From assembly GCA_037447605.1 (NCBI GenBank), contig CM074820.1, positions 744,001 to 808,000 of the forward strand: 64,000 nt of DNA, in the 5' to 3' direction. The notes under the pieces are model-generated. The model saw nothing but the letters and a program-made list of their open reading frames with translations. It had not been told where the DNA came from and made no database searches. Below, piece by piece: positions 7,031 to 46,952 of the stretch; position 1 is the first letter of the stretch; every line of letters starts with the position of its first letter. The DNA is from Zygnema circumcarinatum SAG 698-1b (Eukaryota; Plantae; Zygnematophyceae). The translations under genes were made by a program, and so were the position numbers.

Positions 7031-7369
7031 CTCTCTCAATATTACAACATAAGGCCAAATGTTGTAATATTTAGATTGTTTTTTTTTTAAAACCACACAC
7101 AAACTGCGAAAACAGAATGTGGCCACATTCTGTCGTAGCAGTTTGTGTGTGGTTTTTTTTTGGTTTTTTTCCCATTTTAGGGCTACGTGGCAACACCTGA
7201 TTGGATAACAAACATCCAAAAACACACTACAGCACCAACGTGGCAATTTCTGACTGGATAAGAAGTATAACTAATTCCGTTCGTGCTAACCAATAGGAAT
7301 GCACCACGTGGCCACTTTAAACACGCTACGCAAATACCCTATTTACAACAATACGTCCCGTAAAACATC

Positions 7370-7990
7370 ATAACCACAAACTGTCGTACATAGAAAATGA
7401 CACGTGGCAATCACAGAATCGGTACGAGATATACCACATTTTCTACGCATTAAATCCGACGAAACACACAACCAATCATGACGCGCGACGTGGCAACGTC
7501 AGACTCGCGGAAACTATACCCCATTTTCATTAAATTCATCATTCACAACCTAACCGAATCCGTACACCACATAAAACATCAAAATCGAACGCCGTCGCAC
7601 GAAGTATCGACACGTGGCAATGACAGAATGGGAACGCAATATACCCCATTTTCTGCGCATTCGATCCAACGAAACGCACAACCAATCAGGACGCGCGACG
7701 TGGCAACGTCAGACTCGCGGAAATTATACCCCAATTTCATTAAATTCATCGTTCACAACCTAACCGAATCCGTACGCCACATAAAACACGCCGTCGTACG
7801 TACAAAGTGACACGTGGCAATGACAGAATAAGTACGCGATCTACCCCATTTTCGGCGCATTCGATCCAACGAAAAGCACAACCAGTAAGGACGCGCAACG
7901 TGGCAAAGTCAGACTCGCGGCAACTATACCCCATTTTCATTAAATTAATCTTTGACAACATAATCGAACCCGTCGTACGGATCAAAACGA
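7370..7990. repeat. Three diverged ~200-bp tandem units rich in ACGTGGC; probable subterminal region of a DNA transposon
   Basis: Recurring GACACGTGGCAAT...ATACCCCATTTT...GACGCGC(G/A)ACGTGGCAA(C/A)GTCAGACTCGCGG at ~7400, ~7610 and ~7810. Confidence 0.8.
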
Positions 7991-8025
7991 CCGCAAAGCT
8001 TTTGCCTACGGCAACGCAAAAATTC

Positions 8026-8930
8026 GGGTAACTCTACTGCACCCCCGCGTTTTGTCTTTCGCACCCCCGTTTTGAAATTTTTTTCTGCCCGTTTTGATTA
8101 TCCCCCAGTTTTGAATATTTCGCGAAAAAATCTTTTTCCCGCCCCTTTCGTCCCGTCCTCTGGCTCCTGTTGCGAAACGCTATATAATTAAATGTATGGT
8201 CGACCATTTACATCCGCGGTTGCCTTTTAACGGTAAAGTTAATGGGTTGGTACCGGGAGAGTACCGTGTTTGGACCTTATAGGAAGCTTGTTTGTTTCAT
8301 TCCCCCTCCCTTCATTGTTTTTTGGACATTCCATCCCCTCGTTTTCTCCTTTTCACTATTGACTTCCAACAATGTGCGACAAAAGAAAAGGGGATTTGCA
8401 TTGGTCTCAAGATGGTGAGGCCATCAAATAAACATGGACAAAGTCAACATGGGAACCACAAGAAATTAGTCGCAAATGAAACAAGAACAAAAAAAAAAAA
8501 CTAGGAACAAAAAACTAAACTAAACTAAGCTTAAGTACAAAAACGCAACCTTAAACGCAACTGCAAAGGTCACCAATGTTGGGCAACTGTTACTCTCTGT
8601 TTTCAGGTTACCCCTAATTAAGGCAAGATCTTAAATTGTGGCCTGCTTGCTTGCAATTGCAACATTTTTTCCCTTCAACGTACTCGAAATAGCTCTTGTC
8701 CCGGCTGATTGCCAAACTGCGCGCGCCGGAAGGTCGACCTCGTTCCTTCATAACCGGGTGAGGGTTTTGCAACCGCAATGGTTCGAGGGGGGGCAGCGGA
8801 GGAGACGAAAGGGGCGGGAAAAAGATTTTTTCCCGAAATATTCAAAACTGGAGGGTAACCAAAACGGGCAGGCAAAATTTTCAAAACGGGGGTGCGAAAG
8901 ACAAAACGCGGGGGTGCAGTAGAGTTACCC
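8026..8930. mobile_element. Non-autonomous TIR element, MULE-like
   Basis: ~135-bp terminal inverted repeats GGGTAACTCTACTGCACCCCCGCG...CGCGGGGGTGCAGTAGAGTTACCC. Flanks CAAAAATTC / AAAAAAATC resemble a degenerate 9-bp TSD. No transposase ORF. Confidence 0.8.
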
Positions 8931-9519
8931 AAAAAAATCTCGTAATACTAAGAACTCGATATTCGTAACATTTCGAGTCAACGTCAGTAAAACTAAAATT
9001 CTCGAGCGTAGTTTTTCGCACTCGCGGCGCGGTCCTGTTCGCACTCCGCGATCGCCGTCTTCGCACTTCTCCAAACGCCGTCTTCGCAACTTCGCCCTCG
9101 CGCGGGGCCCTCAGACTTAGAAACAGCGCCGGCGCGGCGCGCGCAGACCGCTTGTCGTTGTGTCGTGTTGCGCGTCACGGGCGGGCGCGGGCGCGGGCGG
9201 GAAGCCGGGAAAACAACCATGACGTCACGTTGACGCGATTTTCGCCAGTATTTTCTTCGCACGTCCATTTCGGCGCCTCTTTTGGGTGCGAACAAAATCA
9301 TGCGAAGAAGTGCCCTTTTTAGTAAACCCCACGGGTCAATCTTCGCAACGTTGACCCGTTGACTTAGCACAGTTGACTTCCGTTCGGTTCGGTTTAGGTT
9401 CGGGGGGGCGATGATTTTTAGTACTTAGTAACCTCGATTCTCGTAATACTAAAAACTCGATATTCGTAACATTTTGTTAAGTCTGACACGCCCTACTGTA
9501 AATAGTCGCCCCCTATTTT

Positions 9520-10400
9520 CGCCATGGTTTCGGCAAATACTGGGCGAAAATATTGTAATTTGCAAATATAAGGTCCGTGTTACCAATAGGCGAGAGGTAT
9601 TATGTTAGAGTTCATGTCTGTCCGTACATATCGTATCGTACCGTGCTTTAGATACACGAGCTCATATTGGTGCCGCGCCTATACCGTACGATTTAGAGAT
9701 TCTATTCGTACTTACCGTACAGCGTTAAAGCGTGACCCATGTTTGAAATCCGTTTCAATTAACAGATTTTGTATTGGAGAATAGGTCAGGTTAGGTTAAC
9801 ACCCCTAATAAGTTAACATTGAGTTACCGTACAAAAAGGTGGTTTCGGCAAAATCGGGGCGAATTTCCTGGGGACGCACTGTACAAGGTGGAAAATATTA
9901 TGGGGGTCCACTGTATCGGCATGGGGGACCGGCAGCAGGGCTATCCAATGGTAGACTGCCACGTAGCAACCTCTGACCCAAAAGGGTCAGGTAAGGACAA
10001 CGTTTCCGTAGGCTCGCCGCATCTCGCGGGCCGCGCCGCGCACGTCGGTGCACAGTCGGATCCTGCGCGCGAGGCGCGGGGTCCGATTGACTACAAGATC
10101 TCTACTCCCCAAAGATCCAAGGGGGGGCGTGATTAGCCAAAATGAAAGTACAGTTTTTTCCCGAAAGGGGGCGCGGATATCCAAAAAGTGGGGCGCCTGT
10201 ATCATTTTCCAGAAATTCGCCCTGATTTTGAGGAAACCACTTTTCGTACGGTAAGTCTGTGTTAATGTATTAGTGGTGTTAACCTAACCTGACCTATTTT
10301 TCAATACAAAATCTGTTAATCGAAGCGGGTTTCGAACATGGGTCACGCTTTCCCGCTGTACAATAAGTACGGATGAAAATCTCATATGGCACCAATAGGA
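9520..10400. mobile_element. Truncated, rearranged copy of the TIR element family also found at 39274-40295
   Basis: 9520-10210 is the reverse complement of 39274-39960. 10212-10400 is a second, inverted partial copy of the internal sequence at 9660-9870. Confidence 0.85.
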
Positions 10401-11147
10401 GCTCGCGACAGGGCCCGCCGGGCGGCCATGCGCCTCCGTACAGAGAGAAACAGTACGGCCGCAGGCTGGACTCTAACATACAGTAATCGTAATAAACATC
10501 GACTACTGTCGGCGTTCACACATCTAGTTTTGCGCTGTACGGTTACGTGGTGCCCATACCCCTATCGTCAAACCATGTCAATATTTGAACGATACGGTGC
10601 GGTTCAGTGTATCGGCCTGGAATACAATCGAATATATCGCGATATGCTCAGTGTCTAAGGCAGAGCTTAGGGCGGTGCAGCAGCTCCTCTGAAGGGCCAT
10701 GGCCATGGCTGCTTCACATTGCAGTAAGATAAGGGCTAAGATCATCATAGCCGCATCATTGATGGCTTTAAATTCCATAGATTCCTTGAATCCGAGGTTT
10801 TCTTTAAGATCCACTGTAGTTCTGTAATTTTTAAATGTACTGTTTTTTTACTCTTTTCTTTTTTAAAGCTTTACTGTAGTTGTATTGTGACTCTTGCGCG
10901 ATTTTTTAATTTTCCTGAAGAGCAGCTATAGCTGGGTTTTCCTGGAGTCAACAGTCTGTATTGGAGCCGTAAGCATTTTTTGCGGTCACGGATTCATGTT
11001 ATTCTGGCACGGTGTTGCAGATTTTATGGCAGATTCAACATGATGAGTGGTGGAATTTGATTTTTTATCGCTGGCTGTGGAAAAGAAATAAGATCGCTAA
11101 GCAGAAATATTGATTTGGCAGTAGTGAAAGCTGAGCAGGGCAGTGAC

Positions 11148-13996: not shown

Positions 13997-16619
13997 CTAC
14001 GGCTCACTCTCTCCCCTCTTCTCCCCCTGCGTCCCAAAAGCAGCCTCTGCCAAATCAACCGCCCTCGCCAAGCCTGCTGCCTTGTTCACGCACTCTTGAT
14101 ACTCCGCCTCAGGCTTGCTGTCTGCCACTATCCCTGCTCCTGCTTGAATATGCACCACCCATTCCCTTCTAGGTCTCGAGTTTTTGTAAGAGTAGAGAGT
14201 GTCATAGCGAGCATAAGTTGGGAAGACCATGGTTCTAAGGGCAAGGGCGATGTCCATCTCTCCTGTGAAGGACACATAGCCCATGCCTCCGCCATAGGGG
14301 CCCCTTCGAGTGGGCTCAAGCTCATCTATGAGCTCCATGGCTCTCACTTTTGGGGCTCCGCTGACAGTGCCCACCGGGAGGGCGGCTCGGAGGGCGTCCC
14401 AACAGGTGAGGTCGTCAAGGAGCTCGCCGGTCACCTGTGGAACATTCACAGGGAAAGCGTTCGAGACTATATGTTGATAGGAGGGCTTTAAGGAATTTGT
14501 TAAACAGGNNNNNNNNNNGGAAGAGGGGAGAGGGGAGAGGGGAGAGGGACGAGGGGAGAGGGGAGAGGGGGGAGGAGGTCCTTACCGTTGAGCTAATGTG
14601 CATGACATGAGAGTAGCGCTCAATGTCCATTAGCTTCTCGACCCGTACCGTTCCCGCCTTGGAAACCTGCCAGGACGAGGTCGGTGGGATATGTCCATCA
14701 ATCAACGACGATGATGTCAATACTACCATCAATGATGCCGGAAAAACCATGTCTAGATTCATGGTACATGTACCTGCGTACTTTCCCTCCGAGAGCTCAC
14801 CGACTGACGTGATTGCATCCCATGCATACCTGACATGCATGCGTATGCATCTCATGCCCACACATGGATCTGTCCAAGACCAAAGCATCCCATCCCATGC
14901 CATACATACATACATACATACATGCATGCATGCATACCTTGCCCACATCATTGCGGCCGAGGTCCACCAGCATGACATGCTCCGCACATTCCTTCTCATC
15001 CGCGAGCAGCTCCTCCGCCAACGCTTGGTCTTCCTCCACAGTTCGACCTCGCCGCCGCGTTCCCGCAAGAGGTCTATTGACCACACGTCGCTGCATTACA
15101 TACAAACAGTTTAGGGTTCCATATGCTCCTGAATGTTGGCGGAGTTCAAGGTTTTTAGGACTTCTACAGATTTCAAGGTTAAAGTTTTCAGAGAACATAG
15201 GTTTTTCTCATGGCTCCACGGATTCCGGGTTAATGATTTTTCTTATCATTGTATCTTTTTGGGCTACTGCAAATTTCATACCTTTTTGGTTTTCTTCTGC
15301 AGAAGTACAGAAATGCGGAAAGTTACGTGTGTGAAAGAGAGTGAGCTCTCACCCCAGGGGCTATGCGACAGAGAATCTCCGGACTTGATGCCACCAGAAT
15401 GCAGCCTCGGGTCTGCAGCAAAAGTAGAGCAGTCAATACGACTACGACTACGACTACGACTACCACTACCACTACCACTACCACTACCACTACCACTACC
15501 ACTACCACTACCACTACCACTACCACTACCACTACCACTACCACTCCCACTCCCACTCCCACTCCCACTCCCACTCCAACTCCCACTCCCACTCCCACTC
15601 CCACTCCCACTCCCACTCCCACTCCCACTCCCACTCCCACTCCCACTCCCACTCCCACTCCCACTCCCACCCCACTCCCATTCCCACTCCCACTCCCACT
15701 CCTACCTCTACTCCCACTCCCACTCCCACTCCCACTCCCACTCCCACTCCCACTCCCACTCCCACTCCCACTCCCACTCCCACTCCCACTCCCACTCCCA
15801 CTCCCACTCCCACTCCCACCATTCCTCCTGCTACAGTGTCCCCCTCCCATTACCACAGCCCCTCCCACCAACACTCGTGCTCATGTTCATCGAAACTCTC
15901 CAAGACAAGCACTCCCTCCCTCCTCTGAAAGCAGTCAGCCATTCCCAATGCAGGAGAGCCCTCCCTGACGGCGGTGGTCACCTGCAGGTAGGTGAGGTAC
16001 GGACTCGGGTTGACGATCCTGAGCGAGCGGTATATCTCGAAGGGGTCCGCGAAGGTCCTCCTCTCAAAGCGCTGACTGAGCACGACCTGGAAGACGTCCC
16101 CCGCGGCGATGCGCTCCTTCGCGAGGAGGACCGCGCGCTCGTACTCGGACCGGGACATGGTGGAGGCCGACAAGAGGGACCCGTACTGCTCCACCGCAAG
16201 GTCCACGCTGCCCGAGTGCAGCTTGGGACTGCGGAGGGAGAGGGGGGGAGAGGGGGGGAGAGAGAGAGGGAGAGAGGGGGAGAGAGAGAGAGAGAGGGAG
16301 AGAGAGAGAGAGAGGGGTCCATGTTTGTGTGTGCGGGTTTGTGTGTGTGTGAGAGAGAGAGAGGGGTCCATGTTTTTGTGTGCGGGTGTGTGTGTGAGAG
16401 GGAGAGAGAGAGAGGGGTCCATGTTTGTGTGTTCGCGGGTGTGTGTGACAGAGAGAGAGAGAGGGTCCATGTTTGTGTGTGTGAGGGAGAGAAAGAGAGA
16501 TGAAAGGGAGAGACAGAACAGAGAGAGAGTGGCTGCACACTGCCTGTATGCGATTGGGGCCTGCAGGAGAGTCCCTGATTGTGTATGTGCGTGTGAGAGA
16601 GAGGGGGGGAGCGAGAGAG

Positions 16620-16652
<33 letters not shown>

Positions 16653-17785: not shown

Positions 17786-17836
<51 letters not shown>

Positions 17837-17839
17837 ACA

Positions 17840-20329: not shown

Positions 20330-21450
20330 TAAACCCCACAAGCCCTACGGCCTGCCTGTGCGCCTCTAACCCTAACCTCAACCCTAACCTCAACCCTAAC
20401 CCTAACCCTAACCCTAATCCCTTAAACCCCTCCCCTTACTCTGTACAAACCCCTCCCTCTCATGCATTCATGCCTGCCCGTACGTATGCATGCATGCATG
20501 CATCCATGCATCCATCCATGGCGTACTGCAGATAAGCGGCAACCCCCTGCCAACTGGCGCCGAGCTGGCGACGTGACGTGACGTGACGTGGCCGACACGC
20601 TCCACACTACAGTACTCGGAAATCGATGTCTGAACCCTGCGAAACCCTCCAGACGGTACGAAGGATAATCGTACGGATGTCCGGAAAGTGTGGCGTCCGT
20701 ACGCCTCCGCAGGAACGCAAAATCCGGAAAACTTCGTGAAGCCTAAACGCTTTTTCGGAAACTTAAAACCCGAATACCGGTTCGGACTCCGAAAATTCAG
20801 AATTCCGAGGAGCACGGGCCAGGACGGCCTGGCCGTCCGTCTGCGTGAGCTGAGTTCAATCCCTGACACGTCCCTTAAAAAAAAACAGAGATAGAAATTC
20901 TCTTGCGAGTACGCATCTGCCTCTGAACCCTAGAAATGTTCTCTAAACCCTAAGACGTGACCGCTCTCCCGAAACCCTACACCCCTAACTCTTCCCCTGA
21001 ACCCCGAGACCTCACCTTAAACCGTAACCCCTGAACCCTAAACCCGAAAACCCTAAACCCTGATTCTATACTCCGACCCTTACTCCTAGCCCTAACCCTT
21101 AATCCTCGCCCCTACACCCAACCCCTACCCAGAAACCCTAAACCCTAACCCCTTGGCCGCCCTCTGATGCCCTAATCCTCTATCCTAACCCTAAAACCCT
21201 GACCCTGAACCCTAAACTTCACCCCTCACCCCTATTCCCAAAACCCTAACCCTGAACCCCCAACCCCTCACCCCTACCCCATCACCCCTCCCCCTCCCCT
21301 CTAAACCCTAAGCCCAAAACCCTAACCCTGAACCCTCACCTCTACCCCCTACCCCCTTCCCCCTACCCTCTACCCCCTACCCACCTCCCCCTACCCCCTA
21401 GACCCTAAACCCTACNNNNNNNNNNTACCCCATAAACCCTAAACCTTCAA
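20330..21450. repeat. Interstitial telomere-like tracts (CCCTAA, CCCTAAA and variants) in the ASA/MED6 divergent promoter region
   Basis: (CCCTAA)n at ~20365-20420; degenerate CCCTAAA/CCCTGAA/CCCCTA array at ~20925-21450, including an assembly gap. Confidence 0.85.
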
Positions 21451-24930: not shown

Positions 24931-26445
24931 CTTAGTTCCTTAAGGCCTTACACAGACCCTGGAGGGCCTCCCATGGGCACGCAACTCCACCATGCGCTCC
25001 AAGTTGCCCAACTCTTCTTGGCGCCCGCCGATTGGTCGGTCTCGTACAAGGGCTTTAAAGGACGAGTGCCACGTGGCGCGCTAGGCTGCTTCCAGGTCAA
25101 CTCTGGCGTCGTGGTCGAACGGTCATATTTTGTCGGTTCACTTGTGGATATATTCAGCCACGTGGACGCTCATCATTAGCTGCGCAGATTTTCCACGTCA
25201 GCATAACACTATCCACACCGAAAAAAAAAACATTTTTAGAATGATCCAATCAGAAGTCGTCACGTGGAGTCTCGCAACCTACAGGCCAAACGGTACGGCT
25301 GGTGGTGTTTCGGGCGGGTTAGTTTGTCGTATCAAACTATCAACCCAGGCAGGCGACAACGCCGGCGGCAAAGTCCTGCCGCCTGCCGTCAGTTGCGCGC
25401 CGTCAATTCTGGTCCCAATACGACAAATGCTCCTGCCCGGAAGAGCCAAGTGGCAGACCGTCAGCCGCCGGTTTGAGGCCGCCGGGTCTCGGGTTCGAAC
25501 CGGGCTCATAGAAGTATACGTGACTTCTTCTCATTGGTCCACGTTTCATGACATATGTCTATAGCGAATGGGTGGCCGACCGTACAGAACACGGTCACGT
25601 GGTCTTTGCGTTTTTTGCCCGTTGCAGGATGACACGTGTTTAATGACGTGGTATCAAGGATGAGCTCGGATTGGTGGAATTTTACCATGCTGGCAAATCA
25701 CATTTGTTTTTGGCTCATCAATTTGGAACGGCTACAATAAAGTGACGTGGAAATTCTGTTCCAGTTCCAGTCTTTCAAAATACGTACACGTCTAATACAT
25801 TTCTATGGTACATTCGTATTCAATGAACATTTGCAGCGTACTGTATCATTGTTAGGTTTTCCCTTGAGCCTCGAGGTAAGGCATTCGCCGGCGCGACATC
25901 CGCTGCCTGCCCGAATAAGAATTAAGAATTAAATTCTGCCCGAATCGTTAGCTCTTGTCAGTAATGCCGGTGATCCACCAATAGCGTTCCGTCCTTCACT
26001 GCCCGGAATTCAGAACGTTTTCGCCCTGCCCTGAAACTTTTGACCGCCAATTGAACCAGCAAAAGATTACTGCGCAGAGTGGCGCCACGTGGCGGCCAGG
26101 ACACTCTTTAGCCTGCCCGAAAACGTCAATTCCGGGCATGCTTAAAAACATCCACCAATGACCTTGCCCGACGTGGCTGCCCGAACTCCAATTAGTCCCT
26201 TATTCTGCCCCAAAATCTTGCAATAGTAATAGCAAACAAGTTCCCCTCCCTTTCCGAGTTCTCACTCAAGCATTAGCCAATTGTGACTCGCCATGTCATC
26301 AACGTTTTCCACGTGTCAAGTCCTTTTTGGTCGAGTGCTTCCTCTTCAGGGAAGGTCCAAAACTCATCTGCACTTTCCTTTCCCTCCCTCGCTCCCACTC
26401 TCCCTCCCTCCCTCCCTCCCTCCCTCCCTCCCTCCAGCAGCAGCC

Positions 26446-33533: not shown

Positions 33534-33583
33534 CCAATGCCGATACGCCACGTACAAATGTCTACGTGGCAGATCACCATTGG
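33534..33583. promoter_or_regulatory. Inverted pair of ERSE-I elements (CCAAT-N9-CCACG) upstream of PDI
   Basis: Perfect matches at 33534-33552 (+) and 33565-33583 (-), about 170-220 bp before the ATG. Confidence 0.7.
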
Positions 33584-33755
33584 CCGAGGCCGGCCTGGCT
33601 CCATTAAGGGCCCAGTCTTCCAAGCCTTTCCGTATGGCCCGAGCGCTTACCTGATTCCTTCGAGGAGGAGGAAGCATATGGTGTCGTAGGGTTGGGCAGA
33701 ATTAGGGTTTTTCTTAGGGTTTTGGAAGCTCCTGCATCTGCATTACAAGCGTGCG

Positions 33756-36700
33756 ATGGCCACTATTTCGCGATATATCGCGGTGACTCTGGTCCTGGTC
33801 GCTGCTTCAGCATGCGCTGCAAGGGCCGGCGAGCATGTGGTGACTTTGGGCGCCTCAAATTTCGATTCGGAGATTCAGAAGCATGACTTCACGCTGGTCG
33901 AGTTCTACGCGCCCTGGTGGGTTGGAAATATGTGGCATTTGGAAAAACGATCTGTCAAAAAAAGTGGTGCCATGCTCGAGATGCAAGCTGATCTCTTAAT
34001 AGATTTTTTTCGTTTGTATGTGCTATTTTAGATGGCTGCTGCAGAGCTTTCTTTTCAAGAATTTTAGTTCCAATCTGCTATGTCTAAGTCTCAGAGCGGG
34101 CCTACCCTGTTAAGCAAAAGCCAATCACAGTCTGCCACGTCCGCGTGTTTGCCACGTGGCAGACTGTCATTGGTCCAATCTTGACTATGGACCCTCCATG
34201 GAGTCCCTCTAAGAGACTGTCTGTCAGTATTTTTGTAATTGAGTGGATGTATGGCTTTTTGCGGGACTTAAATTATCCGCTATTTTTTTTCTTCTTTGTT
34301 TTTCTCGCAAAATCGCCAGCTTTTAAGTCATTGAATTGTGAAACCGCTTCTTTTGCTATTGCTAGAAGGGTCATTGCCGTTAATTTTTGCAACAACTGAC
34401 AGCTTGTATATCGTTATGTTTTCATTGTCGGTGCAGGTGTGGGCATTGCAAGAAACTGGCTCCAGAAGTGAGTTTTTTCTCTCCCTTTTTTGGGTTTTTT
34501 GACCATGATGCATGGATGTTCAGAAAACAGATCCCGACAAAAATAATGCAACGGAGAAGGAGGGCATTGCTCCGCACATTCGTTTGTTTCTGCAGAGTAT
34601 GTAGGTGGCGATTGCATTTGAAAGTCTACTTACATGCCTCGTGGCTCCTCTGCAGTATGAAAAGGCGGCCAAGATTTTGAAAGATGAAGGCTCAGACATT
34701 GTCCTCGCGAAGGTGGATGCCGATAACAAGGAGAACAAGGCGCTCGCGAAGAAGTTCGATATAAAAGGGTTCCCCACTCTTAAAATTTTCCGCAAAGATT
34801 CCGGAATTGAAGACTATGACGGACCCCGAGAAGCTGCCGGCATCGTGAGTGCTGTGAAGAAGCTTGCAGGGCCTCCGACTCGGGAGCTTTTAACAGCGGC
34901 TGATGCCAAGGAGCTTATGGAGTCCTCTTCCGTCTCTGTTGTAAGTAAAGACTTCTCCTCTTTGCTGGGTGTCGAAAGCTGCTTAATGCCGTATGGAGAC
35001 GGGGGGAATCTTTTCAGCTGCAAGAGGGGGGGGGTCCTTCATCCGTTGCTGCTGATAGGGAAGAATGTTGGAGTCATTCGAGGGTTTTGGGGTTTCGTGA
35101 TGATGCAGTGGAGAGTTGGAGAGGGGTGGGTAGAGAGGGAGAGGGAGAGGGAGAGGGGGAGGGGGACGGGGGGAGGGAAGTGCAAGGGATTGGGCGAGAT
35201 GAGAGATGGATTGAGAAGAAAGAGGGATGGAAACGAATCACAATGCGGTAGGTAACAGAGTTCGGTAGAGTGTGAGGAAGTGGAGAGACTTTGAATAAAG
35301 AGAGGCGGACAACACGAGGTGATGAGAGAAAGAGAGGCATTGTGAGGTATAATGAGAGGAGCAATGTAGACATAGGCTGGAGGAAGGGAGGAAAGAGTGA
35401 GAAATAGGGGGCAGAAGAAGAGGGGGGCAGATATCGCGAAAAAGAGGCACGAGAGAGGAAAGGAGAGGACAAGAGACAGATGTAGCCGAGAAAGTAGGAA
35501 GGGGGAAGAAAGTGAGCAAGGGTGAATAGCTCTGAATTCATATGGGGGAGGGGGACCGTGGGGGTGGGGGGAAGGGTGAAATCGAGCCTGCTAGAGAGGT
35601 AGTGAGAGCACATAGGGAGAAGAAAGAAAAGTGTTTCCTGATTTACTGACTATTGGGATGCTTTTATAGGTTGGCGTTTTTGAGGACTTTGAGTCGAAGG
35701 AATTTAAAAGTTTCACTGCTGTCGCGAGTGCTCTCCGCTCGGGACTCAGTTTCGGGCACACCAAAGACCCATCCATTTTGCCGGATAATGGCACTCCTCT
35801 AGTTGCACCTACTGTGCGGCTATACAAAGATTTTGATGAAGGCTTCAATGATATTACAGTAAGTTTTTTTTCGCACCCATTCTACTGCGTCCAGGATGAA
35901 GTTTAGGAAGTTTCAGGGGTGATGCTGTGAAAGTGATGGCGCTGTTGACTGTGGAGAATTAGCTCTTATTGAGTAACGCATATGATTGAAAATTGATGAT
36001 GACTCCACTGTTGCCATAGGGCCAGTATGGTCTCTGTTCTTTTGGACTTGTATGAACTATGTGTTTTGTAAGTAAAGTCATTTTCTGCTGAAATCTAAGG
36101 TACTGAGAATTGGCCGAGCTTGACTTGGTATATTAGTTGTATAAAATGTCAGTAGCGCGAGCAAAGTAGGCTTGATGTGCAAATCTTTCCAATAAGATGA
36201 ACCACGTGCTTTATTGAACAGGTGTTTGAAGAAGAACCTCTGAAGGAGGCATTGGAAACGAAAAGTGTGCCCCTCGTGGTTGAGATGAGCCGTGATGAGT
36301 CTGCAATGAAAGTTTTGATGAAAGTTTTCCAGTCGCCAAAGAGCAAGGTGAGTACAAATTCAGCTGTTTTTACAGATCGATTGGGATTGAAATGTTGGAT
36401 TTGCTTAAATGGGAAAGGTACATTTGAAATCCATTCATTTGCATGGTTCTCTGTTCTCTGTCGAGCCATTCTGTAATTGGGTTATGGTTAGATTTACGTT
36501 TTTAGGTTTACTTTATCGTCTGAACGGGTTTCTGACAGGCAGTGATTCATTGAGGTGCAGGCTCTCCTATTTCTCGACTACAATTCTCCTGAGAAGAAAA
36601 CCTATCAAGAAGCTTACCATGAACTGGCTAAGGCAGGGAAGAACAATGTCAACTTCATCATTGGAGATGGGAAGGAGAACGATCATGCGCTGAAGGTATG

Positions 36701-36878
36701 CAAAAAATGATTTTGTTGCATCCTTTGTTGCTTGGAGGACGAACTAGCCTGCACTTATCAGATGAATTATGTCTCTAGGTGTTGTCTGCAAGAAGCTATT
36801 TTGGAGACCTGTTCGAAGCATGTTAGATGATGCTGTGGTAGCTGTAGGCACTGCTTTTGAAATCTAAAAGAGAGAGAT

Positions 36879-36928
<50 letters not shown>

Positions 36929-38967
36929 GGGGAGAGAGAGAGAAAGAGAGTGAGAGAGAGAGTTGGAGAGAGAGAGGAGGGAAGGGGCAGGTGTAGATTG
37001 TAAGCTTTAACGAACTGAAACGTGGATCATATGATGGATGGAGCATTGTACAGTATTTTGCTGTCAGCATAGAGGACCTCCCCGTGCTGCTCATTCATGA
37101 CACTTCAGAGGATAAGAAGTATGTGAAGACGGGCGTCCAACCCTCCGAACTTGAGAGCTTTGTGGATGACTTCGAGGTGAGACTTATTCTGGCAAGCTGT
37201 GAGAAGGCGAGGGAGAGGGAGAAGCAGACGGAGGGGAAAAAGGGGAGCGAGCGCAAGGCGGGACTGGAAGGGAGAGCACGAGTGGGAGAGAGTGAGTGGG
37301 AGAGAGAGAGGGGGAGGGGGGAAGGGGTCTCTCTTCATGGTTAACCCGTGTTAGTCAACGGTCGTGCTCAGCAATTGAGCTCGCTCATTATTTTCCGTTT
37401 GATGCTTTCGCGACGCCATTTCCACCCATAGATTAAGGACTTCAAAACCCTTTTTTTTTTTTTTTAATAAGCAAGTTTATGCAAATGTGCTTGCATGCTA
37501 ATGGATGATTATGTGGACCCCAGGCTCTCCGAAAGGGAGGGTGGCAGTAGTGAAGGACGAAGGTTATATTGGAGTCGGTTCAGAATTTCTGTTCAATTGT
37601 TATATTTTTTGACTCAAATATCTGAATGGCTTTTGGCAGAAAGGAAAATTGGAGCCCCAAGTTAAATCGCAGCCTATTCCGGAGTCCAATGACGAGCCAG
37701 TAAAGGTCGTTGTGTACAAAAATTTTGATGATATCGTTTTCAAGTCCGGAAAGAATGGTGAGTAGCGCATCACATTCAGCTGCATTTCTTTTTTATCGTT
37801 CCATGTGAATGATTTTTTCTGTTTTTTTTTTTCGTTCTGTTTAGCAGAATTTTATTTTTTTAACATAGACCAGTTTCATGGAAACATTGTTAAATGAAGC
37901 TAAAACATTGGTAACTGAAAGCTGAGGACTGATAATTGCACAGCGGTTTTTTTCATTATGCTTTGGTGAAATTTTTTCCTGACTTCGTGAAAAACTAAGC
38001 TTCAAGGTTCGATGTCTTCCCTGACTGCAGTTACACTTGTCTTTTTACGCATTCTGTTTTAACTTTGTGCAGTTCTTCTCGAGTTCTATGCCCCTTGGTG
38101 CGGCCATTGCAAGCAGTTGGCTCCGATCTATGAGGAAGTTGGAGAGGAGTTTGAGGACGAAGATGATGTCATTATCGCCAAAATGGTTAGTTGAAGAGCC
38201 CTAATTACCTAAAAGTCTTCATCCTTACACTAAAATCCTAAAGATTCGTATCAAAGGAAAGCAAGGGATAAGGGACAAATGGCTGACTCCTTAAAGACAT
38301 TGTTGACGTCATCCAAGCAACTAAAGACCATCAAACGGGGGCATCCTCCCCCCTCCCAATGTCCTATCTCTCTCCCTCCTCTCCCCCGTCACCCAACTCT
38401 CCTCACTCCCTCCACTTCCTCATTCCCGTCTTCTCCGCCCCTCCCCTCCTTTTCCCTCACACCCACAATTCTCCCAACAGTGTGAACTGAAGCGCAAAAC
38501 TGCAATTCCGTTTTGTTGAGACATTACTATTTTTCATTAAGCATGTTAGCTCTGTCCGAGAAGTTGCCATGTTTACCAAACGGCTAGTTGCATTCCGCTG
38601 AAAAACTGCAACGTTCATGGAAATCGTCCCTCAGCCTTGAGACTGAGCTGCCCCTCCTCACATGAGAGCCCCCTCCTCTATGCAGGACGCTGACGGCAAC
38701 GATGTTCCAAGCAACAAGTTCAACGTGAAGGGCTTTCCCACTCTCTACTTCATAAACGCTCAGGGAGTGGTCAAGGAGTACAAGGGAGAGAGGACGAAGG
38801 CTGACCTCATCTCTTACGTCAACAAGTTCAAAACCACACCGTCGCCGCCACCTAGCCCTGTCTCGGAGACTGCGGAGGCTGTGGCAGAAGCTGCGGAGGC
38901 GGCTGCTGAGAAGGCGGCGGAGGGCATTCAGGAAAGCGTAGACCCGGCCGTGAAGGACGAGCTGTAG
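33756..38967 (+). CDS. PDI: Protein disulfide isomerase (PDIL1 type, a-b-b'-a'), ER-resident, 10 exons
   Basis: Exons 33756-33916, 34437-34467, 34656-34940, 35670-35858, 36222-36347, 36561-36695, 37054-37176, 37640-37757, 38073-38185, 38686-38967. Signal peptide, two WCGHCK sites, C-terminal KDEL. Confidence 0.97.
34121..34173. promoter_or_regulatory. Second inverted ERSE-I pair, in PDI intron 1
   Basis: Perfect matches at 34121-34139 (+) and 34155-34173 (-). Confidence 0.6.
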
Positions 38968-39273: not shown

Positions 39274-40295
39274 GGAAAATGATACAGGCGCCCCACTTTT
39301 TGGATATCCGCGCCCCCTTTCGGGAAAAAAATGTACTTTCATTTTGGTTAATCACGCCCCCCCCTTGGATCTTTCGGGAGGAGAGATCTTGTAGACAATC
39401 GGACCCCCTCGTGCACCGACGTACGGCGAGATGGCGAGGCCCGTGAGATGCGGCGAGCCTACGGAAACGTTGTCCTCGACCCTTTTGGGTCCGAGGCTGC
39501 CACGTGGCAGTCTACCATTGGACAGCCGTGCTTCCGGTCCCCCATGCCGATACAGTGGACCCCCATAATATTTTCCACCTTGTACAGTGCGTCCCCAGGA
39601 AATTCGCCCCGATTTTGCCGAAACCACCTTTTTGTACGGTAACTCTATGTTAACGTATTAGGGGTGTTAACCTAACCTGACCTATTCTACAATACAAAAT
39701 CTGTTCATCGAAACGGTTTTTAAACATGGGTCACGCTATCACGCTGTACGGTAAGTACGATAGAATCTTTAAATCGTACGGTATACGTAGGGCACCAATA
39801 GGAGCTCGTGTATGGCAATGCACGGTACGATGCGATGCGATACGATACGATACGTATGGACATACATGAACTCTAACATAATACCGCTCGCCTATTGGTA
39901 ACACGGACCTTATACTTTGCAAATTGCAATATTTTCGCCCAGTATTTGCCTAAACCATGGCGAATATATTATGGGGGTCCACTGTATCGGCATGGGGGAC
40001 CGGAAGCAGGGCTGTCCAATGGCAAACTGCCACGTGGCAACCTCGGACCCAAAAGGATCACGTGAGGACAACGTTTCCGTAGGCTCGCCGCATCTCGCGG
40101 GCCGCGCCGCGATGCGCGGCGCCGTACGTCGGTGCACAGTCGGATCCTGCGCGCGAGGCGCGGGGTCCGATTGTCTACAAGATCTCTCCTCCCGAAAGAT
40201 CCAAGGGGGGGGCGTGATTAGCCAAAATGAAAGTACATTTTTTTCCCGAAAGCGGGCGCGGATATCCAAAAAGTGGGGCGCCTGTATCATTTTCC
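39274..40295. mobile_element. Non-autonomous TIR element with ~300-bp arms and 8-bp TSD (MULE/foldback-like)
   Basis: Termini GGAAAATGATACAGG...CCTGTATCATTTTCC. Exact TSD TTTTTTGC at 39266-39273 and 40296-40303. Confidence 0.92.
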
Positions 40296-40574
40296 TTTTT
40301 TGCTGTGAAAATGTATTCACAAAAGGAAGTACAATACCTCAACTGCTGAAAGGGAGCAATGCAGTGAAGAGTGTTGTCAATGTCGGTGTCGGTTATGATT
40401 TGGATAATTTGACAAACAATTATCGCCATGATCTGGCGGTAGATGACAACACTTCAAAAGCTACCGCATGCGCACGTGTTCCAAGATGCAATCGGCAGCC
40501 AGGGTATGATCGACGATTCGAATCCTGTATTTGAATGTGGCATTCAAAACGCACCAAACCTTGGATTTGCTAAT

Positions 40575-41606
40575 GGAAAATTCTATTCTCACACCTTTTT
40601 TGTCTACGCACAGACCTCTTTTCGCTGGGCAGATTTTAAAATAGACAAAAAACGAACACACCTTTCACACCTTTTTTTTTTCACCTTTTATTTTCACATC
40701 TTTTTGGAATCGATACACGCTACTAGTCCTAAGCGGCCGAGCGCCGTGAGACCTTTTTCTGTCGGGCAGATTTTACTCCTTATCATTTATTTTCAGAGAA
40801 AATACAAAACCTATCTGCTTATCTGCTTGCCCGAATCCGCTCGGAGCGGAAGATCCGTCCGCCACGAGATCGTTCGCGGGTGGCCGTCCTTCACACGTGC
40901 AATAATTTTCCGCCGTCGATATTCACGCAGATCCCACCATGGCAGATCACCGTTCGATCAGCAGCCGGGCTCTGTCCCACGTGTCCCACCCAAGCCGGCT
41001 CCAAGGACCGTACAAAAGGCGTACGCCCGCAGCTTCGAGGAAAGTCAAAAAACGTAATAATTAAAGTTGAGTGCCTGTACCAATCACAGTTTGCCACGTC
41101 TAAAAAGAGCACGCGGCAGATGGTGATTGGTTCAAGCTCGCAATGTAAGGAATTTAGACTTTCCTCGAAGCTGCGACCGTACGAGTTGTGTACGGTCCTC
41201 GAGCCTGCTCGGGTGGGACACGTGGGCGTGTGCCATTCGCTGGAACCGAGCCCGGCTGCCGATCGAACGGTGATCTGCCGTGGTGTGATCTGCTCTAGAA
41301 TCGACGGTGTATAGTTTCTGCACGTGTGAAGGACGGCCACCCGCGAACGATGTCGTGGCGGACGGATCTTCTGCTCCGAGTGGATTCGGGCAGGCCGATA
41401 TTTTTTTCTTTGAAAAAAACAAGTAGGGGTAAAATCTGCCCGATGGAGAAAGGTGTGTATCGATTTCAAAAAGGTGGGAAAAAAAAGGTGAAAAAAAAAA
41501 GGTGAGAAGGTGTGAAAGGTGTGTTCTTTTTTTGTGCTATTTTAAAATCTGCCCGGCGAAAAGAGGCCTGTGTGTAGACAAAAAAGGTGTGAGAATAGAA
41601 TTTTCC
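40575..41606. mobile_element. Fold-back TIR element with ~460-bp arms, ~110-bp spacer and 8-bp TSD
   Basis: Termini GGAAAATTCTATTCTCACACC...GGTGTGAGAATAGAATTTTCC. Exact TSD TTGCTAAT at 40567-40574 and 41607-41614. Confidence 0.92.
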
Positions 41607-42043: not shown

Positions 42044-45000
42044 CTAATACTGAGGGGCGGTTATTTGCGGCCTCTCTGCCAGAATGGGAGACTCTTGCGC
42101 CCCGTACGTATGGATACGGTTGAAGCGCCAATAAGAGTCGGGCAGGTCCTGGCTGAACCAATCCTTCAACTCAGGAAAATTCTGGGCAACTTCCGAGACT
42201 GCAAAGTAGTTGACCGGAAACTGCTCACTTGAGAGAACACCCTCGGTGTGCCGAGGGATTTTTTTAAACTGCATGTTGAAACAAGCTGTCAGCCAAAACT
42301 GCTAAGAAACAGGGGGAAAAAATAAACAAACATGACTCTTACTGAGGAATTGTAAGCAATGTCCTTCTCACACTTTTCCCTCGTCTTCCCCTACTCCCCT
42401 CTTTTCATTCCCTTCTCCCCACATTCCCTGCACACGTCCCCCACTCATTCCATCCTACCTATCCAAGAAACTGCTCCGCTCTTGTCAAAATCTCCATTCT
42501 CCTCCCTCCTCTCCTCCCTCCTCTCCTCCCTCCTCCTACTACTCTCTCGTCCCCTTTGCCATCCTCAATAACTTGTTTCGTTTTTCTACAATCTCTCTCT
42601 CTTTTTTCCTCCATACTATCCTTACGACTCCTCCGCATCGTGACAGCTCGCTCTCTCTGCAACTCCTCTCTCCTTCTTTCCTCTAAGTGCACTCCCTTGA
42701 CTACCCTCCCGCCTCCCCTCCCATCGTTCCCACTTTCCCCCGCTACTCTTTCCTCCTCTACACACTGCCTCCCTCTCGCAAACCCTTCCCCTCCTTTCAA
42801 TATCAGCTTCGTGCAACCGTGCATCACTAATCCAAGGCGAGGCCAAAATTTTACTTCTACCATCTGTGCCCGCTTGGGCTCATCTGTGATGTGTGCGTGT
42901 GTGCGTAACACGAGAGTGTGTGTGTGTGTGTGTGTGTGAGAGAGGGGGAGAACATACCAGGAGAAAAGCAAACACTCGTTCTACAAACTCCTCAGCTGGC
43001 ACCCCAGCAGCGTCTGAGTAGATTTTGCCACAAATTACTCGATGCCTGCAAGTTTCCAGTGAACAAAACAATTCTTAAGTGTCAACTTTTCATCTGTTTG
43101 ATATTACTGAACTTAAGTATGTCATTCACAGAAACCGAATTTCACTGAGAACCAGCACAAGAATAACCAGAGAAACATCAAGAGGCACACGTTTCACACA
43201 TCTACAAATCAATGACAAGGGAAAAGGAAAGAAAGGCTGTTAATATCAGGTATATCAGTAACTTCGAATACGGCCTCTGTACCTTGTATCTTTATCATCC
43301 TTGCTGATAATAAGATCGTACATCCAGCCCCCATTGGTCTTGATCGTCCTCTGAAACTCAATCTCGAACTCCACCAATTCTCCTGAAGGAGCTGTCACAG
43401 CCACATGGTGGGATTTCGCGGCTGATGCAGCCTCTTCACTTGCCATGTCTTGCATCTCCTGGTCAGAGAGTCCTTCCGACTGCAAAATGTACGAAAATAA
43501 ATCCTTATAAGATCACTCTGAATTGCATCGGAATATCTCCTTACGAGGACGCAGCGAAGCAATTGGCAGCCTCTCTTTACCAGCAATTTCACAGTTTTTT
43601 ATGGTGACAGACGGATGATTTGGAAGGCCTTGTAAGGACGCTCGACAATAACAGATTGCTGCCCCTATTCCACTCAAGAACTAACGTAAATATGAAGCAG
43701 AGGTTCATGTCAAGCAAGTGAAGGACCTTGACTTCCAACATCTGTTCAAAAAGCACCTAGTGCTGAAGGAAGGTTCACAAAAACGCTTTTCCCAGCAAAC
43801 TGTAAGCCTGTAATCAGTCTAAACTGACAGGCAAAGACAAAAACCTCCACACAACGCTCGAAAGACCTTAAGCGCGCCAAGACTAAAACTGTCGCCCGAA
43901 GATCTTAACAGTATTGAAATTCTAAAAGAGACGCCTGACAGAGAGCCTGAAATACAATCAGAAGTAAAGAACTGTATCAAATAATTTGCTGAAATCTGGA
44001 ACATGATTAAAAAGCGGAAGAGGAGGAGAGTGAGAACTCACCAGCAACACATCGCACTTTCCCTTTTCCAGCAGAGCAGGATCATACACCATCTGCATTC
44101 GCAGGGAACCAAAGCTCCCATTAACTAAAGAACCTCCCTCCGACAAGCCATAAAAGGGCAGGACTTCACTGAAAACTAGCACTCTGCTGGCTATTTCCAT
44201 GTGCTTCAACTCAACGCCAGCCTCCATGAATATAGGCCATGGTGACAAGAAAGGATAATGGAAAGGCGGAGGAAGGAGGAGAAAGCAAGAAGGGAAAAAC
44301 GACGAAACTGGGAATGGAGGATGAGTAAGTGAAAAGGGGCGAGTGAGCGAGGAAGCAAGAAAAGAAAAACTGAAATGGAGAAACAAACAAACAAACGTGG
44401 TGACAATTTCACCTCTTCCGTGAGACCTCTGTCCTTCATCATCTGCAGAAGCGTCTTGGCCTTAGAGAGAGCAGCTGCGGCCTTCCCTCGCTCTGAAATG
44501 GAGCCCGCGTCTGCCGGCTTCTCCCAAAAATCTCGCTGAACGGGATCCGTGTTTCCAACGGGAGGAATTCCAAGTTCCGACATCCACTGCAGCCACAACA
44601 ACAGTACAGAGAACAGGAAACCGCATAAAAAACAGGCTTCCTCATCCAGTCACACATAATAAACAACTAAAAACTAGTTTTCTTCTTCAAAAGCAAAACT
44701 GGGATAACATAAAAACAGTTAAAGTAAACCATTGAGAGGGGATTGGCCATGAAACTCATAGTAAAGCAGACTGCTTTTCAAGCAGTTTTTTCTCAAAATA
44801 GGGGAGCAAGAGTCACCTGCTGACGAGTATCAAGCATTGCTTTCTGGTCAATCGTTGAGAGAGAAACCAATTTGTAATAGTAGCAGAACTCCGGACGCCT
44901 TCCCATGAGTGTTCGGAGGGAGTTCCTCACATCTTTGGAGAATCCGATGTACTGAACCTTCTTATTCTTGTCCAAAACTGCAAAGACGGATGCTTTTGTT

Positions 45001-45347
45001 CCTGGCTCTACTGGAGGCAATATCCTTCCCTGACTGTTGATGTAGGAGACTAAAGGTAGTTCATTCAACGTGGGGATAGCGCCGCCGGCTCCGCCAGACA
45101 TGGCCTTCGTCACTAGACATCTTCTTGTCGCATTCAACTTCTTATTCAGCATGAAGATTGAAGCAACTTTTCTACGGTTTGTGGCTCCAAGATCAGTAGA
45201 ATTGTGTCTGCTGAGCCCTGTAAAGAGGTCTGCTGACAGCTGCTTGCTAAATCCTGCAGTGGATGCTCTGCTCTGTCGCAGCTCCAGAGATTCACTGATA
45301 ACAGGAGGCGCTGTGAGAGACTTTGCAGCAGAACTCATGGCCTGCAT
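42044..45347 (-). CDS. Probable plastid protein: cyanobacterial/GRXS16-type GIY-YIG-like domain fused to a C-terminal domain of unknown function, 6 exons, ~421 aa
   Basis: Exons 45347-44817, 44586-44413, 44092-44042, 43479-43283, 43045-42958, 42268-42044; phases fit. Ser/Ala-rich N-terminus, then VFAVLDKNKKVQYIGFSKDVRNSL...PEFCYYYK, WMSELGIPPVGN and YDPALLEKG. Confidence 0.8.
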
Positions 45348-46898
45348 GACAGAGGCGGAAATAGGACAATATACAATTGTAGGCGGAAGCAAAAACAAAG
45401 GACGGAAGTGAGGAAGCAGCAACAGAAGGATGCCATCGTCTCCTCGATTCCGTAGCAATGCTTTGTGATAAAAGAAATCCGAAGTGCACGCATTCACGGA
45501 GAGAGTCAACACATAAAAAATCTGGCATGTACATGACTTGGACATCATAAGTAGGTATCTTAAAGAAATCTGGACCTTCTAATGACATTTCGTTCACTGC
45601 CATGCTGGCATTGGCATCGCACAAGAAAAAAAACCGAATACTACACAATCTCAGTCCACGAGGTTTGCCATTAGTTCTTGAAATCGGAAACGTCAACTTT
45701 GAAAAAAGCCTGCTGAGCGAGCGAAACGCGTCACGCAAACGTACCAAAGCCATGGCTGCGTGAGCCTCTCTGATTTCCCTTGCACACAAGCTGCAACTTT
45801 TTGCTGCTGCGCGTTCCAAGAGCTGCCTCCCTCTCTGCCAAGTGCAGCAGTTCCAAGGCACCAGGCGTCAGTGAACGGCGGCTGTAGGGGGAGGCGGAGG
45901 AAGGGAGGGAGGGAGGGACCTGTCCTCCAAACTACACAATGGCAGTAGTCTTCCAATGATATTGCGCCACGTGTGCACGTTTGTACACGTGGCTCTATTT
46001 CATTGGTTGTAAATATGGAATTTAGGAAGGCTGAATGAAAGATCTACTTACTGTACGGAACCATATTCCCGTACATGCCGTACATATGGCTCATGTACGG
46101 TCCAAACCTGGTTTGTACGAGTGACCAAAAAAGGATGAGGAGCTCCTCCCCAAAAACGTAAAAACTGCAAACTCGGTTTGCAATTAGACGAGGTACCAAA
46201 TAGGGTATAAAGTGAATACAACCCTAACTAGATAAGGGTGCCTGCCGCACGCGCGAGAAGATAAGGGATCTGATTGGGCCAATCGCGTTAGTCGCCACCG
46301 ACCACGACTGTCACGTCACGTCCTGTTGTTGTTGCTGTTCTGTGACCTTGCTATTTTGCGACCTTGCGAGGAGCGAGTCCAGTCCCATCCTCAATGGCTG
46401 AGCTTGTGGTTGTTGTTGAACAAGACTCTAGACTCTAGAGGCTCGAAGCTTGAGGTTACCTTATTGTCGTACGACAATTGTGCATATCTTGCTCTGTAGG
46501 TACTGATACCGTTGTGCATGTACCACTGAGGCCTGCACTGGTTCTTTGGCGTGTGATTGTATCACCACAGCTGGTCGCTTATTGCATCGTTTGTTCAACA
46601 AGTCGTCAAGTACAAACGAAGGCTTTCAGACGAGAACTTTCTACCTTCTGACTTATGCTGGCCTGCCATCATCCTGAATCTTGTTTTGAAATCAACAGCG
46701 AGCACTCCAGATCCCAATACGTCATTTGCTGAAGGATCTGGCAGTGGCTACACCACATTTGGCAGCCTTCAAAATTGCCAAAAGCCCGAATCACAAATCA
46801 CCATGCTCCATGAACAACAATAACAACTTGGGGACACTTCGTCCTAAGGGCATTACCATTCAGAGGGCAGACTACGTACACCACGCAAAAGAAGTATC

Positions 46899-46952
46899 CC
46901 AATGGCGATCCACCACGTATGTACAACTGACCACGTGGCACGTTGCCATTGG
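46899..46952. promoter_or_regulatory. Inverted CCAAT-N9-CCACG pair upstream of TPI
   Basis: Perfect matches at 46899-46917 (+) and 46934-46952 (-). Confidence 0.55.

Follow-up and report, generated by a model that had tools for sequence, protein, structure and literature searches.

Few composite promoter elements are common to animals and plants; ERSE-I, one of them, is taken as a marker of the unfolded protein response (UPR). NF-Y and ATF6 bind it in mammals; in Arabidopsis it ranks first among the motifs at bZIP28/bZIP60 ChIP peak summits and is a spacer-length-biased promoter motif, 4-12-fold enriched in tunicamycin-induced promoters (PMC5499772, PMC8752741). A 64-kb stretch of the genome of Zygnema circumcarinatum SAG 698-1b (CM074820.1, 744,001-808,000; hereafter the window, to which all coordinates are relative) holds the same sequence many times over, raising the question of whether the module marks ER-stress genes in this alga or serves promoters more generally. 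The analysis described below indicates that it is probably an ERSE-I-type NF-Y/bZIP composite that serves proximal promoters in general and not just those of ER-stress genes.

A fixed-spacing module and its dyads

A pattern scan found 14 perfect copies of CCAAT-N9-CCACG in the 64-kb window, all 14 continuing as CCACGT, against 0.06 expected from dinucleotide shuffles, which never held more than 1. The frequency of perfect copies is ~200 times chance, and their density in this window is ~220 per Mb. The half-sites stand in the ERSE-I order, on one strand and with a gap of exactly nine bases. Only this spacing formed a peak: between k=0 and k=24, k=9 gave 14 copies, k=18 gave two, k=7 and k=8 one each, and all others none. 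CCAAT pentamers number 153 in the window and CCACG pentamers 141, both moderately abundant; 14 of the 153 have CCACG at N9, and the next commonest partner was found 4 times. The relaxed core CCAAT-N11-ACGT occurs in 19 copies (0.57 expected), with at most one copy at each other spacing from N4 to N18 and four at N19, and there are 13 one-mismatch copies in the window versus ~3.9 expected. The first-pass annotation had listed 13 perfect copies; the scan recovered every one of their coordinates, together with all of its one-mismatch copies (7239, 7472, 7682, 25246, 26155 and 41112), and added a fourteenth at 45953(+), which had been missed and which makes 45953/45988 a full pair. Assembly gaps lie at 14509-14518, 21416-21425 and 23415-23424, and every module copy is in uninterrupted sequence; since the copy closest to a gap (25017, one mismatch) is 1.6 kb away, we ruled out an assembly-gap artefact.

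Eight perfect copies are paired head to head in four unique dyads of 50-54 bp, in which the CCAAT boxes are outermost, the ACGT cores lie inside and 10-14 nt separate the CCACGT ends. The four head-to-head pairs noted previously proved real, their CCACG halves being 12, 15, 16 and 16 nt apart, and a fifth pair (41080/41112) has 13 nt between the halves and one mismatch. Both the N9 spacers and the inner spacers vary among the genic dyads. When 19 copies were compared, high information content was found only at CCAAT, +6, +7, G-CCACGT and the two following bases (+6 is G/C in 18/19, +7 is A/G in 17/19, position 14 is G in 15/19 and position 21 is G/A in 17/19), neither the flanks nor the mid-spacer positions being informative. 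The second half of the palindrome around ACGT varies freely: in the 14 perfect copies CCACGT is followed by G seven times, A five times and C twice, and a full CACGTG is present in half of the copies.

Dyads at gene starts

The genic dyads and the genes beside them are as follows.

33534..33583, no strand: 50-bp dyad (CCAAT-N9-CCACGT, 10 nt, ACGTGG-N9-ATTGG), from the motif scan
33756..38967, plus strand: protein disulfide isomerase (PDI) gene with signal peptide, thioredoxin domains and C-terminal KDEL, from translations and PF00085
34121..34173, no strand: 53-bp dyad within PDI intron 1, from the motif scan
42958..45888, minus strand: six-exon gene with a weak GIY-YIG-like lead, from five CT..AC joints in four runs
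45953..46006, no strand: 54-bp dyad, from the motif scan and RNA contigs
46899..46952, no strand: 54-bp dyad, from the motif scan and RNA contigs
47170..49900, plus strand: cytosolic-type triosephosphate isomerase (TPI) gene, from PF00121, sequence and spliced RNA contigs

PDI carries the highest dose of the module, four perfect copies in two dyads. The first dyad occupies the proximal promoter of this ER folding gene, 173 nt upstream of its ATG (33756); the second falls in intron 1, which we place at 33917-34436 on the basis of splice sites (GTGGGT..GCAG) that restore the WCGHCK active site.

For the divergent pair formed by the minus-strand gene and TPI, transcript 5′ ends were taken from spliced RNA contigs of four studies. 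The dyad at 45953..46006 lies 29-65 nt upstream of the RNA-contig 5′ end of the minus-strand gene, and that at 46899..46952 lies 148-218 nt upstream of the TPI RNA 5′ end, the ends being approximate because they come from assembled contigs and not from cap-selected reads. Exon 1 of the minus-strand gene spans 45744-45888, with a CT-rich tract next upstream. A Pfam search gave no match for this gene, and its GIY-YIG resemblance (atlas score 0.80) is weak, a lead only. The TPI ATG, at 47320, is 368 nt from the dyad, and TPI intron 1 (47358-48224) is defined by a GT..AG joint found in four runs. Compared with positions 42500-48499, the contigs of the four studies showed almost no differences across the covered parts; the two dyads are outside this coverage, and none of these contigs fell in the 1.2 kb between the two genes. 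A 30-nt loose end before 47170, seen in one run, is absent from the window and was set aside as probably belonging to a chimeric contig. Two dyads are therefore located upstream of RNA-defined gene starts, and one upstream of a start codon.

One further group of sites lies near a recognisable gene.

25161..26173, no strand: one-mismatch modules retaining ACGT, in a cluster (25161-, 25246+, 25519-, 26155+), from the motif scan

The cluster holds many ACGTGG sites, and its module at 26155+ is 140-290 nt upstream of the start of an FKBP gene (PF00254). In this ACGT cluster, at 25.4 kb, ARAGORN found no tRNA and Rfam nothing; the only Rfam match in the window is a tRNA at 58930-59028. Only three or four gene starts were placed. 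Neither a perfect copy nor an ACGT-core one-mismatch copy was found near the starts of a methyltransferase-like gene (11.1 kb), an O-fucosyltransferase-like gene (31.2 kb) and the S10 carboxypeptidases (53-60 kb). At least three recognisable genes thus lack the module near their starts, indicating that it is common but not universal. A word search with the 309-aa ORF at 31252 returned just two distant relatives (PF10250 in one of them) and missed the protein of the window itself, and for that reason the gene models used here come from ORFs, Pfam matches and RNA contigs.

Candidate factors and the geometry of the module

The NF-Y consensus is CCAAT followed by C/G and then A/G, and the plant ABRE/G-box has the consensus PyACGTGGC, whose activity requires a second, nearby coupling element. 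Judged from its base preferences, the algal module would be bound by NF-Y at CCAAT[G/C][A/G] and by a bZIP at GCCACGT, and would activate transcription. The NF-Y trimer would occupy CCAAT through the minor groove and the bZIP dimer the ACGT core ~15.5 bp, or one and a half helical turns, away; at such a distance the two binders, one in the minor and one in the major groove, would lie on one side of the helix and could touch, and we propose this contact as the cause of the strict internal spacing. The loose distance between the CCACGT ends suggests two independent units side by side. From ~30-220 bp upstream, a dyad built in this way could activate promoters that have no TATA box and a pyrimidine-rich start region.

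It is unlikely, in our judgement, that other proteins read both halves, whether a lineage-specific factor or a different pair. Candidates would be a bHLH, or a G-box/ABRE-type bZIP together with a CCAAT binder other than NF-Y. The ACGT half, which on the other strand reads [C/T]ACGTGGC, does contain the PyACGTGGC core, and the copies with a full CACGTG are in keeping with such factors; the bZIP partner therefore need not be a UPR factor. However, the algal site has its CCAAT partner at a single, exact distance, unlike the loosely placed coupling element of an ABRE, and the bases following CCAAT are those that NF-Y prefers. The geometry is also exactly that of ERSE-I, for which binding by NF-Y and bZIP is documented in plants and animals (PMC5499772, PMC8752741).

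The algal module shares with ERSE-I identical half-sites, their order and spacing, NF-Y-fitting CCAAT flanks, the constraint on one half of the ACGT palindrome and a place upstream of an ER folding gene. It differs in being also upstream of a glycolytic and an unrelated gene, in its density, in occurring mostly as head-to-head dyads of 50-54 bp and in being carried by small transposons. Human modules of NF-Y and E-box factors (USF, MAX) likewise keep a constant distance between CCAAT and a CACGTG-type site, and human double-CCAAT platforms and LTR12 have E-boxes between CCAAT pairs and are found in both promoters and repeats (PMC3730095, PMC4889920, PMC12065363). The human E box, however, is on the 5′ side of CCAAT, at about -12/-11 counted from the first C of the box (PMC3730095), whereas the algal ACGT core is 3′ and starts at +16. 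The distance between the two boxes of a pair also differs: it is 19, 24-28, 35-37 or 43 bp in human double CCAATs (PMC4889920) and 45-49 bp, between central bases, in the algal dyads, where one box is inverted relative to the other. Our literature search found no description of the motif in an alga, and none of its palindromic form. The strict dyad pattern had 1 match in 596 Gb of prokaryotic genomes, compared with four in these 64 kb, and 0 in metagenome and viral collections. The single prokaryotic match, in a bacterial MAG, looks like an unrelated small palindrome.

Repeats, stress genes and the probable wider use of the module

Repeats account for the other six perfect copies: a MITE-like family holds three, a fold-back element has one at its centre, and a degenerate tandem array has two.

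7180..7990, no strand: degenerate array with 210-bp units from 7383, from the repeat and motif scans
9704..10374, plus strand: MITE-like element with terminal inverted repeats of ~165 nt and a module at 9945-9963, from repeat comparison
39274..40295, no strand: two partial MITE-like copies in inverted orientation, with 84-90% identity among family copies
40575..41606, no strand: fold-back element of ~1 kb with palindromic arms, from inverted pairs (76% over 503 nt)
41080-41130, no strand: 51-bp dyad at the fold-back centre with one perfect and one one-mismatch arm, from the motif scan

The array contains perfect copies at 7186(-) and 7290(+) and one-mismatch copies at 7239, 7472, 7613 and 7682. 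The partial MITE-like copies, which sit in the 3′-3′ intergenic region past PDI, carry the modules 39503-39521(-) and 40016-40034(+). The copies at 9945, 39503 and 40016 (one family) and at 41080 (fold-back) sit within homologous repeat units; flank comparison and an inverted-repeat search revealed no such unit around the eight genic copies. The six repeat-borne perfect copies are away from known gene starts, and one genic dyad is intronic.

The first-pass annotation had taken the module for an ERSE-I sequence that is not confined to UPR genes and had proposed that transposons spread it. The sequence assignment holds, as does the reach beyond UPR genes, given the dyads upstream of cytosolic TPI and of the unrelated minus-strand gene besides PDI. 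Transposon spread of the genic copies is not supported: 4/14 copies are in recognisable mobile-type elements, with 2 more in the tandem array, and after collapsing repeat families 10-12 independent copies remain versus 0.06 expected. Flank comparison of the genic dyads with each other and with the repeats showed similarity that ends at the motif edges, and a palindrome search found flanking inverted repeats at none of the four; the excess therefore survives repeat collapse and, the genic dyads being unique DNA, transposon copy number alone was rejected as its source. We also regard as improbable a transposon-driven network, in which the genic copies would be exapted remnants of module-bearing elements that landed beside genes. 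The repeat-borne perfect copies would fit such a network, as would the resemblance of the fold-back centre to the dyad in the PDI intron (77% over 57 nt, 20/21 in one arm). That resemblance, however, is what is expected of two near-consensus sites, the spacers and inner gaps vary by locus with conservation only at factor-contact positions, and the transposon copies here lie in a 3′-3′ intergenic region, not in promoters. It is more likely that the transposons carry host promoter grammar than that they created it, the small fold-back and MITE-like elements having probably borrowed it; the genic copies may, less probably, stem from ancient exaptation.

An ordinary ER-stress regulon, whose copies would mark UPR targets only, as in land plants and mammals, is very improbable. 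The highest module dose is indeed at PDI, a classic UPR target. However, perfect dyads also stand upstream of the cytosolic enzyme TPI and of a gene without recognisable family or any sign of an ER role, and both the density of ~220 copies per Mb and the copies in transposons go against restriction to UPR genes. Chance or base composition, which has nothing in its favour except the moderate abundance of the two pentamers, can be dismissed given the shuffles, the sole spacing peak, the ~0.17 copies calculated from the two pentamer counts and a strict dyad matched once in all the prokaryotic DNA searched.

Our preferred reading remains that of a general proximal-promoter module: found ~200 times more often than by chance, and a short way upstream of both ordinary genes and a stress gene, it resembles a routine component of promoters. 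Here is a land-plant relative with ERSE-I at such density, upstream of glycolytic, unrelated and PDI genes, and in its genome ERSE-I counts are unusable for predicting UPR genes. More tentatively, ERSE-I, which in land plants and animals is reserved for ER stress, might be a main general-purpose promoter grammar of this streptophyte alga, a palindromic platform of ~54 bp (NF-Y/bZIP/bZIP/NF-Y) that opens many TATA-less housekeeping promoters. If the general-purpose reading is true, it would suggest that ERSE-I arose as a general NF-Y-bZIP module that was later narrowed to the UPR, and small fold-back transposons with the module could seed new promoters. So simple a promoter grammar, if confirmed, would provide short synthetic promoters for an alga with few genetic tools. 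It also raises the concrete question of how an NF-Y/bZIP module became stress-specific.

Abundance and anatomy of the module

We found 14 perfect copies of the CCAAT-N9-CCACG (ERSE-I) module by pattern search of both strands of the window, versus 0.06 expected from dinucleotide-preserving shuffles. The first-pass annotation had claimed such an excess; all 13 sites that it listed were recovered, together with one more at 45953(+), which pairs with that at 45988(-). The spacing is strict: when the spacer was varied from 0 to 24, N9 gave all 14 copies, N18 two, N7 and N8 one each, and every other length none. CCACG is followed by T in 14 of 14 perfect copies, indicating that the true second half is CCACGT. 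We counted 19 occurrences of the relaxed core CCAAT-N11-ACGT (0.57 expected), while its other spacings from 4 to 18 occur at most once each and N19 four times. Among the 153 CCAAT pentamers of the window, 14 have CCACG at N9, and the runner-up partner was seen with only 4. One-mismatch copies (13 versus ~3.9 expected) mostly keep the ACGTGG extension. The density in this window is ~220 per Mb. The three assembly gaps within the span of the module (14509-14518, 21416-21425 and 23415-23424) lie at least 1.6 kb from every copy, and the findings are therefore independent of continuity across them.

We aligned 19 copies (12 perfect, with a three-copy repeat family counted once, and 7 near-perfect). 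Information content was high only at CCAAT and the next two bases, at the G directly before CCACG (G in 15 of 19), at CCACGT, and at two further bases 3' of it (G/A, then G/T). Almost none was carried by the spacer's central part, the 3' flank or the eight bases 5' of the module. The first base after CCAAT is G/C in 18 of 19 copies and the second A/G in 17 of 19; NF-Y prefers CCAAT followed by C/G and then A/G. On the opposite strand the ACGT half reads as [C/T]ACGTGGC, by its sequence a bZIP-type site. The ACGT palindrome is constrained in one half only (ACGT is followed by G in 7, by A in 5 and by C in 2 of the 14 perfect copies), as in ERSE and unlike the symmetric pattern of a G-box.

Head-to-head pairs and the genes beside them

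Of the perfect copies, eight are arranged head to head as four pairs (dyads), in which the ACGT cores face inward and the CCAAT boxes outward; a fifth pair has one mismatch.

Dyads and neighbouring genes (window positions)
33534-33583: dyad, 50 bp
34121-34173: dyad, 53 bp
41080-41130: dyad with one mismatch, 51 bp
45953-46006: dyad, 54 bp
46899-46952: dyad, 54 bp
33756-38967: protein disulfide isomerase (PDI), ATG to KDEL stop
45881-45888 (-): 5' exon end of a six-exon gene of unassigned family, from RNA contigs
47100-47170 (+): start of cytosolic triosephosphate isomerase (TPI), from RNA contigs; ATG 47320, GT..AG intron 47358-48224

Spacing within each half is invariant, whereas the gap between the CCACG pentamers varies (12, 13, 15, 16 and 16 nt), which suggests that a dyad is two independent units side by side. 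Searched as a strict pattern with 22 fixed bases and an inner gap of 8-16, the dyad occurs four times in the 64-kb window, with no match in the metagenome collection or among viral contigs and one in 596 Gb of prokaryotic genomes. That sole match, a short palindrome on a contig of an Acetobacteraceae MAG (L001 1512-1564), is probably an unrelated operator-like site.

Genes were placed by ORFs, Pfam matches and RNA. PDI, the sole clear ER gene, carries two dyads: the first lies 173 nt 5' of the ATG and the second within intron 1, which we infer to be 33917-34436 from its GTGGGT..GCAG splice sites and the restored WCGHCK active site. The PDI 5' leader also contains, between dyad and ATG (33702-33724), two telo-box-like TTAGGGTTT motifs.

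For the other two dyads we aligned to 42500-48499 the contigs of four sequencing runs, drawn from four studies of the same organism. Their splice joints are canonical, and depth is high in exons and 4-18 in introns, showing that the contigs are RNA. Given the 5' exon end of the minus-strand gene and a low-complexity tract up to 45924 that was skipped in the alignment, we place dyad 45953-46006 between 29 and 65 nt 5' of the transcript end. The 5' end of the TPI RNA lies 148-218 nt downstream of dyad 46899-46952, and a later exon of this gene matches the triosephosphate isomerase family (PF00121). None of the four runs gave a contig in 45900-47100, so that the interval between the divergent genes is silent over 1.2 kb, with one of the two dyads at each edge. 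Inspection of the sequence revealed no TATA box in either promoter, and both transcripts start in pyrimidine-rich tracts. In the contig of run X2, 30 letters before 47170 had no match in the window; the contig may be chimeric, or TPI may have an upstream exon that is unassembled. In the middle of the silent region (46270-46330), an ATTGG-G-CCAAT inverted pair precedes a CCACG and a pair of ACGTC sites, a CCAAT/ACGT cluster with spacing unlike that of the module.

An FKBP gene has a one-mismatch copy (26155) 140-290 nt upstream. The module is common in the window but not universal, as three or four other recognisable genes lack an ACGT-core copy close to where they begin. These comprise one methyltransferase-like ORF at 11.1 kb, one O-fucosyltransferase-like gene at 31.2 kb and a pair of S10 carboxypeptidase genes at 53-60 kb.

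Several other features were seen. The stretch 25000-25760 is dense in ACGTGG, CACGTG and TGACGTGG sites and CCAAT boxes, including three one-mismatch modules; no gene, tRNA or Rfam RNA was recognisable there, and the stretch could serve a transcript that is not annotated, as its enhancer or strong promoter. Just inside the start of the plus-strand S10 carboxypeptidase-like ORF 59873-60295, the 7-mer ATTGGCC is repeated in tandem (7.4 copies, 60120-60171), giving seven minus-strand CCAAT boxes. Between the two divergent S10 genes Rfam reports a tRNA (58930-59028, 51.8 bits) that ARAGORN does not, and which probably contains an intron.

Repeat-borne copies and the proposed transposon spread

Repeats carrying the module (window positions)
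7180-7990: degenerate array with two perfect and four one-mismatch copies
9704-10374: 670-bp element bounded by ~165-nt terminal inverted repeats
39274-40295: two partial inverted copies of the 9704-10374 element, 84-90% identical to it
40575-41606: 1-kb fold-back element, arms 76% complementary over 503 nt

Perfect copies 9945, 39503 and 40016 belong to one repeat family, and the centre of the fold-back element is one perfect copy with its one-mismatch partner. The elements at 39-41.6 kb occupy the 3'-3' interval that separates PDI from the minus-strand gene and not a promoter.

The first-pass annotation proposed that the module is an NF-Y/bZIP cassette not confined to UPR genes and spread by transposons. 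When 200-nt flanks of all sites were compared, only the three family copies shared them; the genic dyads resembled each other and the repeats only within the dyad itself. Comparison of 600 nt left with 600 nt right of each dyad found palindromic arms at the fold-back element and at none of the four genic dyads. The fold-back centre and the PDI intron dyad are 77% identical over 57 nt, ending at the motif edges, a likeness that would be expected of two near-consensus sites. The proposal is thus half right: dyads at TPI and the minus-strand gene as well as PDI bear out a use beyond the UPR, but the genic copies, which have neither transposon flanks nor arms, give no support here to their spread by transposons. 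Nor is the excess mere copy number of one repeat family, since 10-12 independent copies survive repeat collapse (0.06 expected; Poisson < 1e-13).

Other repeats were observed. Degenerate telomere-like repeats of plant type (ACCCTAA) occupy 20.9-21.5 kb and 23575-23627, beside assembly gaps; these and the telo-boxes of the PDI leader are consistent with a streptophyte alga. Region 1-6000 is GC-rich (~60%), with strong A-over-T skew, two assembly gaps and repeats 98-100% identical spaced 2.1 kb and 1.27 kb; its long ORFs have no Pfam match.

A possible mechanism and known systems

With an NF-Y trimer bound at CCAAT and a bZIP dimer at GCCACGT, the two centres would be ~15.5 bp apart, placing a minor-groove and a major-groove binder on one helix face, which would account for the strict spacing. 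The same basis is assumed for ERSE-I of mammals and Arabidopsis. A dyad would set two of these units face to face, with ACGT centres 14-18 bp apart, forming an orientation-independent platform of ~54 bp, 30-220 bp upstream of start sites that lack a TATA box. Judging from the site, the binder of the ACGT half could be a UPR-type bZIP (bZIP17/28/60) or a G-box/ABRE-type one.

In sequence and geometry the module is identical to ERSE-I. In Arabidopsis promoters ERSE-I shows a bias in spacer length and is enriched at tunicamycin-induced genes (PMC5499772), and it lies at the summit of bZIP28 and bZIP60 ChIP peaks (PMC8752741). The window differs in density, in use at non-ER genes and in the palindromic dyad. 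The E box of the human NF-Y/USF module, at -12/-11 of CCAAT (PMC3730095), is on the opposite side of CCAAT from the ACGT half seen here. Human double-CCAAT platforms have boxes 19-43 bp apart (PMC4889920), whereas those of our dyads are inverted and 45-49 bp apart. Repeat-borne NF-Y sites are well known in mammals (PMC3730095, PMC12065363). In the literature we found no description of an ERSE-I-type general module or dyad in an alga. These sequence comparisons suggest that the module is a general promoter module, a variant of the known ERSE-I element that is partly repeat-borne.
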